Shown here: positions 9,886-62,352 of the stretch, piece by piece
Position numbering within the stretch: position 1 is the stretch's first letter
Layout of the letters: each line of letters begins with the position of its first letter
IMG/VR virus record: IMGVR_UViG_3300023184_000025
Location: 62,001-126,000 of that record
Length of the DNA: 64,000 nt
Reading direction: 5' to 3' (one strand)
Translations under genes and position numbers: made by a program
The notes under the pieces: generated by a model
Databases searched by the model: none
What the model was told of the DNA's origin: nothing
What the model saw: the letters and a program-made list of their open reading frames with translations, nothing else

Positions 9886-10443
9886 TCAAAATTTGTCTGT
9901 AACTACCCATTTGCCTTCTCGGATTTGGCAAATAACACCCTGGTATGTTCGGATATCTCTAGCAACAAAGTTAGATTCCACAAACCATTTACATTCGGTT
10001 CCATTATGATAAAAACGGTTTGGGTATTCTGGATGGGGCCTAAATTGACCAACATCACCAACTGTACCAACTTGTGTGCTGGACAGGACGGACAATGTTG
10101 GTTGGTCCTTGCAGATCAGAGTCTTTTCACTAGTGGTTTGATTTTTGCCCACACGTTCTCTAACCGAATCGTCGGCTCTAGAAACTGCAATAGCACAGGC
10201 TTCATTTTCGGGACGGTCGCCGGACCAATTGTACTCTCCAAAAGCAGTATGCCAATTTACCCCTACTCTGGCCCTAAAGTCAACTAGACATTTTTTGCCA
10301 GTTGCAGTAGCAACCACATCTCTCCTGATCTGACTGCGTTCTGCAATAACCACAGAAGTTTTGGTAACGGAACGATCTTGTAGTACACATTCTTGAGCAC
10401 CAACAGCCGCTGGTATCAGTAAAAGTATTAATGTTTTTTTCAT
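9886..10443 (-). CDS. Secreted Cys-containing protein
   Basis: Signal peptide, six Cys. Confidence 0.7.
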   Translation of the reverse strand: MKKTLILLLIPAAVGAQECVLQDRSVTKTSVVIAERSQIRRDVVATATGKKCLVDFRARVGVNWHTAFGEYNWSGDRPENEACAIAVSRADDSVRERVGKNQTTSEKTLICKDQPTLSVLSSTQVGTVGDVGQFRPHPEYPNRFYHNGTECKWFVESNFVARDIRTYQGVICQIREGKWVVTDKF

Positions 10444-10781
10444 GAGCAATCTCTTGTCAAGTGCAGTAGATGTTGATTAATCAACCAGTTTGTGCGACCA
10501 CTGTGAATACTTTGTCGCTGATAGTGTTCTTCATTGTCTGTCCAACGGCTCCAGGGTTGTGTTAAATTTCCCACACCTGCTAGCATACGTTCATCTCTTC
10601 CAGAACGCATGCTCTGCAGAAACTTAATTTGCTGTTCTTTAATACGACAATTAATTTGAAAGCTTTCCAAATCAATAGCATGTATCGGCTGTTGTACAGC
10701 ACAGCCACTAAACAGGCTGACAAATATAACGGATGCGCCAAATGCGGCTACGAACCTGGCGTTGAAATTCTGCAGAATCAT
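10440..10781 (-). CDS. Putative lipoprotein
   Basis: FSGC lipobox-like. Confidence 0.6.
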   Translation of the reverse strand: MILQNFNARFVAAFGASVIFVSLFSGCAVQQPIHAIDLESFQINCRIKEQQIKFLQSMRSGRDERMLAGVGNLTQPWSRWTDNEEHYQRQSIHSGRTNWLINQHLLHLTRDCS

Positions 10782-10923
10782 TTTGGGTACTCTGAGTTTC
10801 TAACCATCTGATTATGGCATGTCGATTGGCACAATCATCTGGAATGAGTGTGACGTCAACAGGCGGCCGGGTAGATGTACACCCTGTAATTAATAAAATG
10901 GATAAAAGAAAAATCCTGTTCAT
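10708..10923 (-). CDS. Putative small lipoprotein
   Basis: ITGC lipobox; ATG 6 nt after a -10 box. Confidence 0.6.
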   Translation of the reverse strand: MNRIFLLSILLITGCTSTRPPVDVTLIPDDCANRHAIIRWLETQSTQNDSAEFQRQVRSRIWRIRYICQPV

Positions 10924-10929
10924 GTAGCT

Positions 10930-10958
10930 ATTATACACAAACAGGATTTATTGGTCAA
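10930..10958 (-). promoter_or_regulatory. Early promoter TTGACC-N17-TATAAT
   Basis: Repeated promoter family. Confidence 0.85.
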
Positions 10959-11763: not shown

Positions 11764-12471
11764 CTAAGTCTTTGCGCCGGAGAAATAATGTGCGGCGATC
11801 ACCGACTGTACAAGGCTGTCTAGGCTGTTAACAATGGGTATGCCATCCTCAATGGAAATGTTGATACTCAAGGGCAATTCGGTACAGCCTAGAACCACAG
11901 CTTGTGCGCCACGATCGATCAAGCTATGAATTACTTTCATTAGCAACAACTGAGATTCTGTAATCTTGCCGGCCTTGACCAGGTCAATAGCAGGTTGTAC
12001 AAAAAAGTCCATTTCAGCACGATCTGGAACTATACATCTCCAGCCTTGTTGCTCTAGTCTTTCTTGATATAAACCATATTCTATTGTGCCTTGTGTGCCC
12101 ATGATGCCAATGGTGGTATTGTCAAGCTGTAATTTACGGAGCTCGTCGGCTATGCTTTCTACTATGTGTAAGATGGGCACACCCATTTTGACCATGTCAT
12201 TGTACCAAAAATGTGCTGAGTTACAAGGAATAACAATACTGTCACACCCTAGTGTTTTTAATGCCTGTATACCTTGTAACATCAACAGTAATGGCCGATT
12301 GTCGCCGGCCTGTATACTTGTACTACGATCAGGAATTCTTGGCTCATTCCACAACACAAAAGGTATGTGTTCTTGATCGCAAGTGGCCGGCGACTGCCTG
12401 ATTAATCTAGTTACAAACTCTGCTGACGCTGCCGGTCCCATGCCTCCTAGTATGCCAAGTTTTTTTACCAT
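11764..12471 (-). CDS. Aspartate/glutamate racemase
   Basis: GILGGMGP, PCNSAH and GCTELP (both catalytic Cys present). Confidence 0.9.
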   Translation of the reverse strand: MVKKLGILGGMGPAASAEFVTRLIRQSPATCDQEHIPFVLWNEPRIPDRSTSIQAGDNRPLLLMLQGIQALKTLGCDSIVIPCNSAHFWYNDMVKMGVPILHIVESIADELRKLQLDNTTIGIMGTQGTIEYGLYQERLEQQGWRCIVPDRAEMDFFVQPAIDLVKAGKITESQLLLMKVIHSLIDRGAQAVVLGCTELPLSINISIEDGIPIVNSLDSLVQSVIAAHYFSGAKT

Positions 12472-12530
12472 ATTAAAATTAATACTATTAGTATGACTAT
12501 GATGCCAGCAATGACTCCTGGTAGTCTCAT
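12465..12530 (-). CDS. 21-aa single-TM peptide (not in the ORF track)
   Basis: MRLPGVIAGIIVILIVLILIW; overlaps both neighbours. Confidence 0.55.
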   Translation of the reverse strand: MRLPGVIAGIIVILIVLILIW

Positions 12531-13132
12531 TTTTTATCAAACAGTAAACTTGACGCAACAATTAGTACAGTCTGTGCTAACTCTACTTCTGTTGGTTGCT
12601 CTTTCCAACCTACACTTATTTGTCCTATAAACAATCCAGGGTCTGCTGGCACGCTTATGCGACACATGTATGTTACTCCATAGTTTTTATAAGTAAATCC
12701 AATATAACTTTGTGGTGTTAGATACGGACCGCATGGAATTTTGCCTGACATTAATCCAATTACATCTTCGTTGTTGCTGTGATTCTTAGTAAGCAACCCC
12801 ACATTGGTTCCATCATGGACTGTGTCATGTCCTGAGCCTCGTGTAGTTAGATATACTAATTTTCTGGTGTTCAGTAATGTGTTAACTTGGAATACAGCCA
12901 CAAGCTCTGCATCTGTATTCTTTAGTATAAAATTGACTGCTTGTTCATATTTGCCGTTCATCTTGGGCAAGGCCTGTTGAGCACGATAACTTGCCATGAA
13001 GTTATCTTTTTCAGTATAGGCTACCCATCCTAAAAAAGTGAATAGGCAAAGGAACACAACTGTAAATAGGCGAAATGGACTTTCGCCTATAAACTTTAAC
13101 AGTTCAAGCAGTAACTCTTTAAGTTTGTCCAC
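12527..13132 (-). CDS. T4 holin T-like protein (N-terminal TM plus periplasmic GAF-like domain)
   Basis: Size, topology and pattern similarity to T4 T, aligned by eye from memory. Confidence 0.5.
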   Translation of the reverse strand: MDKLKELLLELLKFIGESPFRLFTVVFLCLFTFLGWVAYTEKDNFMASYRAQQALPKMNGKYEQAVNFILKNTDAELVAVFQVNTLLNTRKLVYLTTRGSGHDTVHDGTNVGLLTKNHSNNEDVIGLMSGKIPCGPYLTPQSYIGFTYKNYGVTYMCRISVPADPGLFIGQISVGWKEQPTEVELAQTVLIVASSLLFDKK

Positions 13133-14396
13133 CGGCAGTTACCTCTTTGTCGCATACAAATGCTGTGACTGCTACGTTGCCGTGTACATGACTTGCTGTG
13201 CGAATCATATCCATTAATGGATCAACTGCTATCAACAATACCAATACAGCTTCGCTTGGTAGTTTTAACAAATCACAAACAACTGCTACAGTAGCAACTG
13301 TTAAGATACCTGTTGTACCTGCACTTGCTAATCCGGCTAAAATACTACCAAACAATACAACTGCTAAACCGGTAAGTCCTAGAGGAGCATCATAGATGTT
13401 GGCAATGAATACTGTAGCAATAGCATAGTAAACAATGCTACCAATACGGTTAACAGTGAAACTTAGTGGAACTGTTAGTTCAACTCCACCTTTGTCAAAA
13501 TGTAGTTTATGTAAGGCTTCTTGTGCGTATGGAATACAAGCCAATGAACTACGTGAACTAATAGCAACAATTAATGTTTCTTTAGTTTCACGGATAACAG
13601 TGGCAAGGCTTAATCCACTACGTGCCCAAATCACAGCAGTACCTGCGGCAACTACTAATAGTCCGCCAATGAACTGTTGGAACACAAAGTCAAACATTGT
13701 TAAGAAAATACCAACTCCAACTTTACCAACTTGACTGCTGATCATTGCCAACAATGCAAATGGTAGGAAGTAGTTTAAGAATTTGAAAATACTAATACTT
13801 GCTTGTTGAACACTCTTCAGTACTTCAACCAACATACGTTGTCCTTCTGTTTTCAAGTGACCCAGTGCAACTCCAAATATCAAACAGAAGATAACAATCT
13901 TCAAACTTTCACCATTGTTCAGTGTGGCAAAAATGTTTTCTGGGATAAACTTCTCTGCCATTTTACCAGCACTGACTGCGGGTGCCGTTGACATTGGTTC
14001 GTGAAGGGTAATGTTTAATTCAGTTCCGGTATCTTTGTTGTTGACTAGTACACCAAATTCTGTTTTCTTCTCAGGAGTCATTTCTGTACCTGTTACTAGT
14101 ACAGTTCCTACACCAATAACAGCAGCCAAGAACATACTGCCAACAAAGCCCACAATAATTTTGCGAATTAATTCCTGACTACCTTCTTTTTGTAATAGCC
14201 CAATGATACCAACTAGAATAGTTGCTAACAAAAATGGTAGTACAACTACCTTTAGCAAACTAATATAGATACTACCAATACTGTCAAGACCCATACTAAA
14301 CTCAGGTGCGTAAACGCCGCCTAAAATACCTGCGATAATTGATCCTAAAATAGTCCAAGGACTAGTCAGGAAACTTTTTAAATGTGTTGTTGTCAT
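13119..14396 (-). CDS. Dicarboxylate/amino acid:cation symporter (DAACS, GltP family)
   Basis: IPENIF, SSRSS hairpin-1 motif, DMIRT TM8 motif. Confidence 0.9.
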   Translation of the reverse strand: MTTTHLKSFLTSPWTILGSIIAGILGGVYAPEFSMGLDSIGSIYISLLKVVVLPFLLATILVGIIGLLQKEGSQELIRKIIVGFVGSMFLAAVIGVGTVLVTGTEMTPEKKTEFGVLVNNKDTGTELNITLHEPMSTAPAVSAGKMAEKFIPENIFATLNNGESLKIVIFCLIFGVALGHLKTEGQRMLVEVLKSVQQASISIFKFLNYFLPFALLAMISSQVGKVGVGIFLTMFDFVFQQFIGGLLVVAAGTAVIWARSGLSLATVIRETKETLIVAISSRSSLACIPYAQEALHKLHFDKGGVELTVPLSFTVNRIGSIVYYAIATVFIANIYDAPLGLTGLAVVLFGSILAGLASAGTTGILTVATVAVVCDLLKLPSEAVLVLLIAVDPLMDMIRTASHVHGNVAVTAFVCDKEVTAGGQT

Positions 14397-14405
14397 GCTA
14401 AATCC

Positions 14406-15239
14406 TTATTTCTTTTCAGCTTTGTAGCGATCCATTAACTTTTTAGTGTCAATGTTGTTGTATTCATTCTTAATAACGTAATTAACAATGCTTAACAATT
14501 GAATCGATTTGGGATTTACTGCTACTGCAATATAGTCCACGCTGTCACTAATTGCAATTGTTTTGGTACTAATTGCGGCATCTGGCTTTTCGAAGGCAAT
14601 TTTCTTAATTTCAAATTCGTCACGGTAAGCGGCAGCAATAGTGCCCTTGGTAACATTATCAATAATCACATCCCATTTTTCTTCAGGAATAAATGTTGCG
14701 TTAGGAAAGTTAATACGAGCAAATGTGTCGTAGCTGGAATTCTTGATAAAACTTATCTTGCCATTGAAGTCACGGATAACTTGATATGTTTCTTTACCTT
14801 GACTGTTTTGACTTAGCCATAGACGATTAACAATTAAACTTTGTCTTAGCTTAACATAAGGATCACTGAATCTAACTACTTGTAGTCGAGGACCAGTTAC
14901 TGACAGTTTACTAACTGCAATGTCTGCTTTGCCTTCTCTGATCTGTTCAACAACTTCAGCAAAGCTTTCTGCATCGCGTCTGAACTGCACAGGAACTCCA
15001 AGTAGGACACCAATTCGTCGAGCTATCTCGACGTCAAGACCATGAATGTTATCCCCTTCTCCGGAGAAGAAAGGAGGAACATCTTTTTTGGTCATTGACA
15101 CAACAAGAACATTAGCTTTCTTGATTGCGGCAATATCTGAAGGTAGTGGTACTGTTGAGTTAGCCAGCTGTGCTTGTCCCGTTGCCGGGGTAGTCCACAG
15201 GGTAACTAGTACGGATAGTAATAATAGTAGTTTTTTCAT
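14406..15239 (-). CDS. Periplasmic amino-acid-binding protein (SBP family 3)
   Basis: Signal peptide; PPF, GLDVEIA, GKADIA, FSDPY motifs. Confidence 0.9.
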   Translation of the reverse strand: MKKLLLLLSVLVTLWTTPATGQAQLANSTVPLPSDIAAIKKANVLVVSMTKKDVPPFFSGEGDNIHGLDVEIARRIGVLLGVPVQFRRDAESFAEVVEQIREGKADIAVSKLSVTGPRLQVVRFSDPYVKLRQSLIVNRLWLSQNSQGKETYQVIRDFNGKISFIKNSSYDTFARINFPNATFIPEEKWDVIIDNVTKGTIAAAYRDEFEIKKIAFEKPDAAISTKTIAISDSVDYIAVAVNPKSIQLLSIVNYVIKNEYNNIDTKKLMDRYKAEKK

Positions 15240-15244
15240 AATTA

Positions 15245-15252
15245 TATTTATA
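15245..15252 (-). promoter_or_regulatory. T4-like late promoter TATAAATA
   Basis: Exact T4 late consensus 5 nt before the ATG. Confidence 0.65.
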
Positions 15253-15319: not shown

Positions 15320-15346
15320 AAAAAAAGAGCCTTTTTTGGGGCTCTT
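15320..15346 (-). terminator. Intrinsic terminator
   Basis: AAGAGCC/GGCTCTT stem plus U run. Confidence 0.75.
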
Positions 15347-15427: not shown

Positions 15428-16084
15428 TTACTTTCCTAATAATGTATCAACTTTAGCTTCAGCGGCGTCTAAACGTGCTTCAATAGCATCTAGTGCTGAA
15501 TTTGAAGGAATAGCAACTGCTTCAACAACTTGTTGAACTACTTCAGGAGCAACAGCTTCAACACCTGTTGCGGCAGCAATAACTTCGGCAACTGCTTCAG
15601 CAACTTGTTGTGCTACTTCGGCGGCCGGAGCTGGCATGTCAGCCACTGCTTGCATGATAGCTTCTGTGATTGCAATCGGGTCAACTACAACCTCTGGGTC
15701 GGCGGCGACGACTGCTTGAACTGCGGCTGAAATGATGTCAGCAACTTCTTCATGAGCAACTGCTTCTGATTCAACTTGTGCTGTAATAACGTCAGCAACA
15801 ATGTCAGCGGCTTCTGCGTGGTCAGCACTTGGAGAAAGTGCAACTACTTCTGCAACTGCGCTTTGAATGCTTTCAACTGCTTGTGCCGCTGCCGCAACAA
15901 TAGCGTCAACGTGTTCTTGAGTTTTTACAGCAATTAATTGCTCTACTTGAACTTCAACAACGGATAATCTTGCGTCTAGTTCTTCAATACTAGTAGCACC
16001 GTCTGTATTAACTGTTGTACCGGTTAAATTTGCTAATTTGGCTTCTACGGCTACTAATCTTGTAGCTAAATCATCTAATCTCAT
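15428..16084 (-). CDS. Acidic Ala/Val/Glu-rich helical protein with coiled-coil ends
   Basis: No F/W/Y/C; strong SD AAGGAG. Confidence 0.75.
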   Translation of the reverse strand: MRLDDLATRLVAVEAKLANLTGTTVNTDGATSIEELDARLSVVEVQVEQLIAVKTQEHVDAIVAAAAQAVESIQSAVAEVVALSPSADHAEAADIVADVITAQVESEAVAHEEVADIISAAVQAVVAADPEVVVDPIAITEAIMQAVADMPAPAAEVAQQVAEAVAEVIAAATGVEAVAPEVVQQVVEAVAIPSNSALDAIEARLDAAEAKVDTLLGK

Positions 16085-61564: not shown

Positions 61565-62352
61565 CGGTACTGTATTAAATCAATGTTTCCGTCAGATATA
61601 CCAAATGATAATCTTAGATAAGGATGATACCCCTCAACGTTGATGCCTAATCTTTCAACTGCATGAATAAAGTTTATTTCTGACACAGTATTACTTGTTT
61701 TTAAATCTTCAAAGTCTACATCGTACCATTCAACAGTATTGGCTGTGGCATCTGACGATCCTTGTACTTGAAGTGTGCCAGTAAAGTCCACTGGATCAAT
61801 TTGGAATGTAGTAATACGTGTACCATTTGTGGTAATTGTACTGGTGTAATGGATAGAGCTGTCAGGGGCTTGGCTTGGGATAGTTAATTCTTGGCTGGCA
61901 ACAAAAGCTGGAAATACGCTGTCTACAATATCAATATTCCCACGAGCGCCTGCATAGTCGTCTGTGAATACTGCTTGATTTAAAACGCCGGACGTAATTT
62001 CTAAACTCCAACTAGCGGGCTGTGCTTGAAAATATGTTGTCTCTTCGGCAGTGACAGTTACTTTAGCTCTACCTGTTGGTGCATTAAGTGTTACAAGCTC
62101 TTTGGCATATAACAAATTTTCTCCGTCTTGACTAATCATACGAAACGTAAACGTTGCGCCTGTGATGTTTACAGGTTTTTGGTCCTGGTTTAGAAATTGG
62201 AATAAAATAACATTATCCACTCCTAAATTTAATTTTAAGTCTTTTGCGTACACTGGTTGCCACCTTCTATCAAAAGTTGAGCCAATGCCTGACGTGTCAA
62301 TCAGAATTACCTGTTGGATTTGCTGATATAAATAGGCAGTGGTTGAATACAT
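61561..62352 (-). CDS. Putative virion structural protein (BppU-like beta domain)
   Basis: TAAATA 62369-62374; F.NQDQKPVNITG motif. Confidence 0.55.
   Translation of the reverse strand: MYSTTAYLYQQIQQVILIDTSGIGSTFDRRWQPVYAKDLKLNLGVDNVILFQFLNQDQKPVNITGATFTFRMISQDGENLLYAKELVTLNAPTGRAKVTVTAEETTYFQAQPASWSLEITSGVLNQAVFTDDYAGARGNIDIVDSVFPAFVASQELTIPSQAPDSSIHYTSTITTNGTRITTFQIDPVDFTGTLQVQGSSDATANTVEWYDVDFEDLKTSNTVSEINFIHAVERLGINVEGYHPYLRLSFGISDGNIDLIQYR

Follow-up and report, generated by a model that had tools for sequence, protein, structure and literature searches.

Phage T4 holin T (gene t; Pfam PF11031, Phage_holin_T, class III holin) is a protein of about 200 to 220 aa with a cytoplasmic N terminus, a single transmembrane helix, and a globular periplasmic domain of about 150 aa, and it is this periplasmic domain at which the secreted antiholin RI acts (PMC11413866). 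GAF domains, which are classic small-ligand sensors, occur in phytochromes, cNMP phosphodiesterases, and sensor kinases. As for amino acid uptake, an SDF transporter and the racemase CuyB are neighbors in the cysteate locus of Bilophila wadsworthia, together with CuyA and RidA, and they import and racemize cysteate (PMC11193023). Furthermore, periplasmic binding proteins that serve secondary (non-ABC) carriers are found in the TRAP and TTT transporters. Here we analyzed a locus in which relatives of these systems, including a remote homolog of holin T, are joined in one operon of a clade of uncultured freshwater giant phages (contigs of 237 to 524 kb). A literature search for phage auxiliary genes combining a racemase and a symporter found no paper.

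Organization of the operon

The window analyzed is a stretch of 64,000 nt (positions 62,001 to 126,000 of IMGVR_UViG_3300023184_000025). Five overlapping or abutting minus-strand genes were found behind a terminator-like hairpin and an exact TATAAATA, and the observation made in the original prediction was thereby confirmed, with the genes at the positions it had given. The features are as follows.

15325 to 15346 (-): terminator-like hairpin (7-bp stem, 4 GC pairs) followed by the T-run TTTTTATT, which ends the upstream gene (15428 to 16084) and insulates the operon
15245 to 15252 (-): exact TATAAATA, 5 nt upstream of the SBP ATG; candidate -10-type promoter element
14406 to 15239 (-): secreted family-3 solute-binding protein (SBP), 277 aa, with a Sec signal peptide
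13119 to 14396 (-): DAACS/SDF secondary transporter of the Asp/Glu type, 425 aa
12527 to 13132 (-): p201, a 201-aa holin T-like membrane protein
12465 to 12530 (-): 21-aa hydrophobic mini-ORF (MRLP plus a hydrophobic helix)
11764 to 12471 (-): PLP-independent two-cysteine amino acid racemase (Asp-racemase family, CuyB-like), 235 aa

For the SBP, a longer ORF runs to 15278, but the signal peptide starts at 15239. The DAACS gene begins 9 nt after the SBP stop and is preceded by AAGGA, and p201 has a GTG start preceded by AAAGAGG and overlaps the DAACS gene by 14 nt. The ATG of the 21-aa ORF overlaps the p201 TGA, and the racemase ATG overlaps the stop of the peptide by 7 nt.

Relationship of p201 to holin T

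The original prediction had matched p201 to T4 holin T by eye, and this match holds, although it was not detectable by simpler searches. Pfam and NCBIfam gave nothing for p201, and neither p201 nor any of the 64 members of its family matched PF11031 at E values up to 0.01 to 0.1. PHROGs gave only a family of unknown function (phrog_31287), direct BLASTP against T4 T found nothing (E, 4.6), a profile against the single T sequence was weak (15%), and sequence and profile searches of the PDB gave only noise and did not find T. Only a profile-profile comparison was decisive: hhalign of 64 diverse family members against 29 T holins gave a probability of 94.9% (E, 4.8e-8) over 189 columns, end to end. 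The periplasmic domains alone gave 86.6% (E, 4.5e-6), whereas swapped-domain controls gave 0.2 to 0.5%. Thus, the homology is real but remote, and it rests on profile-profile and fold evidence at 10 to 13% identity.

A single-sequence AlphaFold run of p201 gave an unusable model (pLDDT, 44.8), but a run with the 64-sequence alignment gave a pLDDT of 96.5. The model shows an N-terminal amphipathic helix (residues 2 to 16) and a transmembrane helix (about residues 19 to 40), followed by an alpha/beta periplasmic domain, and accords with the architecture of T. In a Foldseek search, the T chains 6psk_T, 6px4_B, and 6pxe_F ranked 2, 5, and 6 of 350,542 chains (TM, 0.65 to 0.69; 0.62 to 0.69 over all T chains listed; rmsd, about 4.2 to 6.0 Å), among GAF domains. 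Isolated GAF domains such as 3o5y and 2zmf matched with TM up to about 0.6, and because GAF domains in general score as well as T, the fold alone does not prove a holin. Unlike the GAF sensor proteins, p201 has its domain in the periplasm, anchored by one transmembrane helix, with no output domain and no known ligand. The original prediction had taken the GAF-like nature of the T domain as established, but the papers that we read do not use this term, and the statement rests here only on our fold search. Hits in BFVD included annotated class III/T holins. The invariant cysteine pair of T (C175 and C207) is not matched in p201, whose family has C134 (invariant) and C157 (at least 90%) at other positions, as well as a conserved G170.

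Relatives of p201 sit next to endolysins or spanins. The relative P0122 (40% identity) lies directly after a GH108 endolysin gene, P0124 (39%) lies after a LysC-like gene, and P0138 overlaps a Phage_lysozyme gene. In the phylogeny, the endolysin- and spanin-linked relatives P0122 and P0124 are the next sister group of the cassette clade after L021, a locus in which the p201 relative stands alone without SBP or DAACS. Besides, T4-like Cronobacter phage S13 has no canonical T (best E, 0.32), but its gp076 matches the p201 profile at 1e-45. An endolysin lies 0.5 to 2 kb from the cassette in about 10 related contigs, whereas none was found in this 64-kb window. In contrast to T, p201 is embedded in a transporter operon and not next to tail-fiber genes, and no RI-like gene was recognized beside it.

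Putative uptake and conversion module

The SBP belongs to SBP_bac_3 (PF00497; E, 4e-17), and its closest solved proteins are amino acid ABC binding proteins. However, no ABC permease or ATPase was found in the operon, in the scanned window ORFs, or in any related locus, as the original prediction had noted for the operon. The symporter belongs to SDF/DAACS (PF00375; E, 1e-64), and its best solved matches are the aspartate transporters GltTk/GltPh and EAAT3. The D..RT substrate motif of Asp/Glu carriers, which lies in TM8, is kept, in that DplmDmiRT aligns to DrilDmaRT of an aspartate transporter and to DwllDrfRT of EAAT3, with N-to-H and GD-to-GN changes next to it. The combination of an ABC-type family-3 binding protein with a DAACS carrier, which differs from TRAP and TTT in both components, is not known to have been described.

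The racemase belongs to Asp_Glu_race (PF01177; E, 2e-40), and both catalytic Cys motifs (ipCNsAH and GCTE) align to those of the solved aspartate racemases 3s7z and 1jfl. It passes the NCBIfam cutoff for cysteate racemase CuyB (216 bits against 190), and asp_race gave 167 bits. Since the Bilophila locus likewise pairs an SDF importer with CuyB, it is conceivable that the enzymes form a sulfonate (cysteate) auxiliary metabolic module in which the holin is a passenger. We consider this very unlikely, because neither a CuyA-type sulfo-lyase nor any other PLP enzyme was found among the window ORFs of 120 aa or more and because the closest solved enzymes are aspartate racemases. The phage cassette also lacks RidA and adds a family-3 SBP and a holin-like gene. 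Moreover, in some relatives (loci L090, L094, and L112) the racemase is replaced by a DadA-like D-amino acid dehydrogenase (434 bits), which fits D-amino acids in general. This replacement points to consumption of imported D-amino acids rather than to the production of D-Asp/D-Glu that the original prediction had inferred.

Conservation, covariation, and a second T-like gene

In every informative viral contig that carries the symporter (over 60), p201 follows it directly, whereas the racemase is sometimes displaced or replaced; when present, the fourth gene is always a D-amino acid enzyme. All four genes have dN/dS values of about 0.09 to 0.11 (about 0.09 for both the SBP and p201), indicating purifying selection. 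Whether the cassette is instead a common bacterial uptake locus had been set beforehand as a test, and a scan of genome contigs with DAACS found only one 3-kb MAG contig, which carries the phage cassette itself; this argues against a common bacterial locus, although the result does not extend to SBP-DAACS-racemase loci without p201. A blastn search of the locus against cultured phages found no match, and tblastn of DAACS and racemase there hit mostly bacterial or mislabeled records.

The SBP and DAACS covary (Spearman, 0.94; Mantel P, 0.0005), but p201 does not covary with them (r, 0.32 with the SBP, not significant). Besides, the same phage carries a second T-like gene (par2) about 118 kb away, with its own coupled lipoprotein and of a type often found beside endolysins, its clade including members directly beside endolysins. 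The idea that p201 is the only T-like gene of the phage is thus rejected, and p201 is not the only lysis candidate.

The strict coupling of p201 to DAACS could mean that p201 serves the transporter. In this view, p201 was taken over from a holin ancestor as a nonlytic accessory or regulatory subunit, perhaps a membrane tether or gate coupling the binding protein to the carrier, and par2 is the true holin. A DAACS carrier has no known way to use an SBP, so that an adaptor is plausible by inference. Nevertheless, this reading is unlikely, since p201 does not covary with SBP or DAACS as expected of a tight physical subunit, its nearest relatives outside the clade are lysis-cassette genes, and an endolysin lies next to the cassette in about 10 relatives.

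The original prediction had proposed that the SBP and transporter sense extracellular or periplasmic amino acids to time lysis. In such a clock, the SBP (like RI) or the GAF-like domain of p201 itself would sense D-amino acids or Asp/Glu released when neighboring cells lyse, hole formation would be delayed or triggered, and the transporter and racemase would set or clear the signal. The architecture and predicted fold shared with T, the secreted SBP always coencoded with p201, the linkage of p201 to DAACS, and the D-amino acid enzymes speak for this idea, and free D-amino acids are cell wall derived. However, nothing shows that the SBP or transporter controls lysis, there is no direct evidence of interaction, the SBP coevolves with DAACS but not with p201, p201 relatives in ordinary lysis cassettes have no SBP, and L021, the closest outgroup of the cassette clade, stands alone without SBP or DAACS. 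We therefore regard ligand-timed lysis as possible but unsupported, and unlikely on present evidence. Overall, the interpretation given in the original prediction was supported only in part, namely, for the homology to holin T, the fold, and the conserved, translationally coupled operon.

Proposed role of the operon

We consider it somewhat more likely than not that p201 is a T-type lysis protein coexpressed with a scavenging module for acidic, probably D-form, amino acids. In this view, the SBP and symporter are inherited as a pair, and a cytoplasmic enzyme, the racemase here or the DadA-like dehydrogenase in some relatives, would make the imported compound usable. p201 most likely works as a holin, or as a holin partner of par2, and would accumulate in the inner membrane and take part in the triggered permeabilization that releases endolysin. 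Because p201 starts inside the end of the symporter gene, it would be made from the same mRNA and in step with the transporter. The gene content, homology, fold, conserved order, purifying selection, and lysis-gene neighborhoods of relatives come directly from our analysis, whereas hole formation and endolysin release by p201 (for which the evidence is only indirect, from relatives beside endolysin or spanin genes and from a relative that replaces T in phage S13), the substrate (D/L-Asp, Glu, or cysteate), and late timing are inferred, and a physical or ligand coupling between the uptake proteins and p201 remains hypothetical.

Our results extend the T lineage, until now recognized mainly in T4-like phages, to a large unannotated family (PHROG 31287), which has about 600 clusters at 90% identity and is found in environmental and giant phages and in a T4-like phage lacking canonical T, and they indicate a sensor-type (GAF-like) predicted fold for its periplasmic domain. 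The operon ties such a protein to a binding protein, a secondary amino acid carrier, and D-amino acid enzymes, and it allows the hypothesis that nutrient or cell debris signals affect when the host bursts, giving a concrete, testable system for the long-standing question of whether phages can time lysis by small-molecule cues. If p201, with the SBP and possibly with par2, formed a ligand-responsive holin/antiholin system, in which acidic or D-amino acids from lysing neighbors reset the lysis clock, this would be a small-molecule counterpart of T4 lysis inhibition built on a GAF-like holin domain, but we consider it unlikely. Independently, the locus is a candidate case of an ABC-type binding protein working with a DAACS carrier and of phage-encoded D-amino acid scavenging.

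Promoter-like element and the 21-aa ORF

The original prediction had called the operon late, but the octamer TATAAATA occurs only 3 times in the window against 4.6 expected by chance. These counts speak against its use as a genome-wide late promoter, and thus the T4-type late promoter reading is only weakly supported and late expression is unproven. As a candidate promoter element, it would give a leaderless or near-leaderless mRNA. The same octamer occurs at the same 5-nt spacing in 5 of 11 diverged orthologous upstream regions, and one-mismatch versions lie 4 to 6 nt before other operon-first genes.

The 21-aa ORF is not a universal part of the operon. It is preserved as MRLP[GST]VI plus a hydrophobic stretch in 6 of 13 junction variants with diverged DNA, whereas in the other 7 it is absent and the racemase ATG overlaps the p201 stop.

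Gene content and organization of the operon

The window is part of a very large uncultured phage, and identical copies of the locus were found on IMG/VR and ENA contigs of 192-345 kb. Neighboring genes encode ClpP, ClpX, ribonucleotide reductase, DNA ligase, a DnaB-type helicase, UvdE, and a tail-fibre-like protein. Besides, the phage is unusually rich in host-like helper genes: in addition to ClpP, ClpX, and UvdE, the window encodes NifU-like and IscA-like Fe-S assembly proteins, HSP20, a fatty-acid desaturase, a thioesterase, radical-SAM/SPASM enzymes, a UDP-sugar dehydrogenase, and a PAAR protein, and a GroEL is encoded elsewhere in the genome (L154:6445-8064; L154 is IMG/VR contig 3300023174_000044, from the window's own phage). 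On the minus strand, five ORFs are packed with overlaps or 9-nt gaps, as follows.

14406-15239, minus strand, family-3 solute-binding protein (SBP)
13119-14396, minus strand, DAACS symporter
12527-13132, minus strand, p201, with a GTG start, a Shine-Dalgarno sequence AAAGAGG, and a 14-nt overlap with the DAACS gene
12465-12530, minus strand, 21-aa ORF whose ATG overlaps the p201 TGA
11764-12471, minus strand, racemase whose ATG overlaps the stop of the 21-aa peptide

A hairpin plus T-run terminator lies upstream at 15346-15325, and a convergent ORF closes the unit downstream. Family searches assigned the three enzyme and transport genes to SBP_bac_3, SDF/DAACS, and Asp_Glu_race, respectively. 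The racemase also passed the NCBIfam cutoff for the cysteate racemase CuyB, and it aligned to solved aspartate racemases with both catalytic Cys motifs. The carrier keeps the Asp...Arg-Thr motif of aspartate/glutamate transporters, with two nearby substitutions. The five-gene arrangement described in the original prediction is confirmed.

Candidate promoter element

An exact TATAAATA lies 5 nt before the SBP ATG, although this octamer occurs only 3 times in 64 kb, against 4.6 expected by chance. In diverged orthologous upstream regions, the same octamer recurred at the same 5-nt spacing in 5 of 11 cases. Within the window, operon-first genes (15239, minus strand; 28556, plus strand; 56289, plus strand; and 62364, minus strand) are preceded by TATAAATA or one-mismatch versions ending only 4-6 nt before the start codon, which suggests promoters that give leaderless or near-leaderless mRNAs in this phage. 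It is probably a real -10-like element giving near-leaderless transcripts, whereas its reading as a T4-type late element, and hence of the operon as late, remains unproven.

Remote homology of p201 to T4 holin T

Simple searches failed to assign p201: no Pfam or NCBIfam hit and no PDB sequence hit was obtained, and BLASTP against T4 T gave an E value of only 4.6. The p201 family is nevertheless large, with 602 clusters at 90% identity and 96 representatives at 50% identity. We compared an alignment of 64 diverse members with an alignment of 29 T holins, all carrying PF11031, by a profile-profile method. This gave 94.9% probability (E value of 4.8e-8) over 189 columns from the N-terminus to the C-terminal helix, and these are the same segments that had been aligned by eye in the original prediction. 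The periplasmic domains alone gave 86.6% (E value of 4.5e-6), whereas mismatched-domain controls gave 0.2-0.5%.

With the 64-member alignment as input, AlphaFold gave a model with a pLDDT of 96.5. A Foldseek search with this model placed the solved T periplasmic domain (6psk_T, 6px4_B, and 6pxe_F) at ranks 2, 5, and 6 of the PDB, with TM scores of 0.62-0.69 over all T chains listed, and the surrounding hits were GAF domains. In the viral structure library, the hits included annotated class III/T holins and "GAF domain-containing" phage proteins. There is one clear difference, in that the invariant C175/C207 pair of the T family is replaced by a different conserved pair, C134/C157. p201 is a remote homologue of T4 holin T, and the assignment represents a new, large, and so far unannotated branch of a known holin kind.

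Evidence bearing on a lysis role

Relatives of p201 sit in lysis cassettes. The relative P0122 (40% identical) lies directly after a GH108/PG_binding_3 endolysin, P0124 (39%) lies after a LysC-like gene, P0138 overlaps a Phage_lysozyme gene, and the copy in MW202825 lies three genes from a lysozyme. In a maximum-likelihood tree, the cassette proteins formed one clade (support, 100/100), their immediate sister was a stand-alone copy (locus L021), and the next sister group was the endolysin/spanin-linked P0122/P0124.

Cronobacter phage S13 (NC_028773), a T4-like Straboviridae phage, adds support. Nothing in its whole genome matched the T profile (best E value, 0.32), there is no gene at T's syntenic place between the gp38-like gene and asiA, and the phage has no annotated holin, although it still has spanins, lysozymes, and an rIII-like gene. 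Its gp076 (L024:4905-5486, the S13 locus), annotated as hypothetical, matched the p201 profile at 1e-45 and is probably its holin.

A phrog_181 endolysin lies 0.5-2 kb from the cassette in about ten related contigs. It is absent from this window, where no endolysin family was found. About 0.8 kb downstream of the operon (10440-10938, minus strand), two overlapping ORFs of 76 aa and 113 aa both start with lipoprotein signal/lipobox sequences, and the 76-aa ORF hit "Rz-like spanin" PHROGs, although only weakly (E values of 0.002-0.005).

A second T-like gene

We found that two related loci, L013 and L014, carry a second paralog (par2, 29% identical to p201) just after the racemase, followed by two small ORFs and a convergent endolysin. 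The contigs of the window's own phage carry par2 as well (80% identical to the L013 copy), about 118 kb from the cassette (L154:3992-5300; also L153). There, par2 (244 aa, with a Lys/Pro/Ala-rich N-terminal extension) is translationally coupled to a 114-aa Cys-rich lipoprotein and followed by a 77-aa ORF. The trio is conserved in dozens of viral contigs, often near an endolysin, and the par2 clade includes members directly beside endolysins. The lipoprotein could be an antiholin or spanin partner. The phage therefore has two T-like proteins, and p201 may be a holin, a co-holin, or an antiholin-like partner.

Conservation of the operon

In all viral contigs carrying the DAACS gene with sequence available downstream (more than 60 loci; DAACS identity, 69-100%), p201 follows immediately, overlapping or abutting, and the SBP always precedes DAACS. 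The racemase usually follows p201, either directly or after the mini-ORF. The mini-ORF is preserved as MRLP[GST]VI plus a hydrophobic helix in 6 of 13 junction variants and is absent in the others. In three loci, unrelated genes are inserted between p201 and the racemase (L053:5890-7583, L065:5891-6935, and L102:5877-8012), encoding Gly-rich, Laminin_G_3/ConA-like, PA14, and metal-hydrolase (PF10118) proteins; the p201-racemase junction tolerates insertions, while the DAACS-p201 junction never has any.

In three other related loci (L090, L094, and L112), the racemase is replaced by a DadA-like FAD D-amino-acid dehydrogenase, which scored 434 bits on NF009074 and 1e-55 on PF01266, whereas in L095 no such enzyme follows. 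Two unrelated enzymes that both act on D-amino acids take the same slot, which argues that the imported compound is, or includes, a D-amino acid that is converted for use and not produced, although the original prediction had proposed that the phage makes D-Asp/D-Glu.

All four large genes are under strong purifying selection, with dN/dS of about 0.09-0.11. The distance matrices of SBP and DAACS agreed (Spearman, 0.94; Mantel p, 0.0005), whereas p201 and the racemase have discordant histories (r of 0.26-0.42, not significant). The operon is therefore a mosaic that keeps its order.

Interpretation

In the best-supported reading, a T-type lysis protein is co-expressed with an acidic or D-amino-acid scavenging module. 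The gene content, the conserved order, and the homology of p201 are shown by the analysis, whereas the lysis function of p201 and the nature of the imported compound are inferred. The original interpretation, in which the phage senses amino acids through the SBP and transporter to time lysis, is only partly supported: the resemblance to holin T held, and the sensing model is not excluded. A secreted binding protein always encoded with a T-like protein that has a predicted sensor fold echoes the RI-T pair (PMC11413866), but the model lacks any direct support, and the absence of SBP-p201 co-variation weakens it. It is also possible that p201 has been recruited as an adaptor for an otherwise unprecedented SBP-DAACS pair. 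To our knowledge, the obligate embedding of a T-like gene of this family in an operon of a binding protein, a secondary carrier, and a D-amino-acid enzyme has not been described, and a full-text literature search found no such description.

The pairing of an SDF carrier with a CuyB-type racemase, on the other hand, is a known bacterial uptake pair (PMC11193023). Another racemase-carrier pairing, probably bacterial in origin, was found in MT837652.1, a 6.5-kb "Bacteriophage sp." record from human faeces, in which an Asp-racemase homologue (33%) lies next to a DAACS homologue (24%). The phage cassette was most likely assembled once around a holin gene and has been kept since. A short contig binned into an "Alphaproteobacteria" MAG from Lac Pavin (L035; JAPLOJ010000301.1; 2,980 bp) carries the phage DAACS-p201 cassette (91% identity), which is either mis-binning or a hint to the host.
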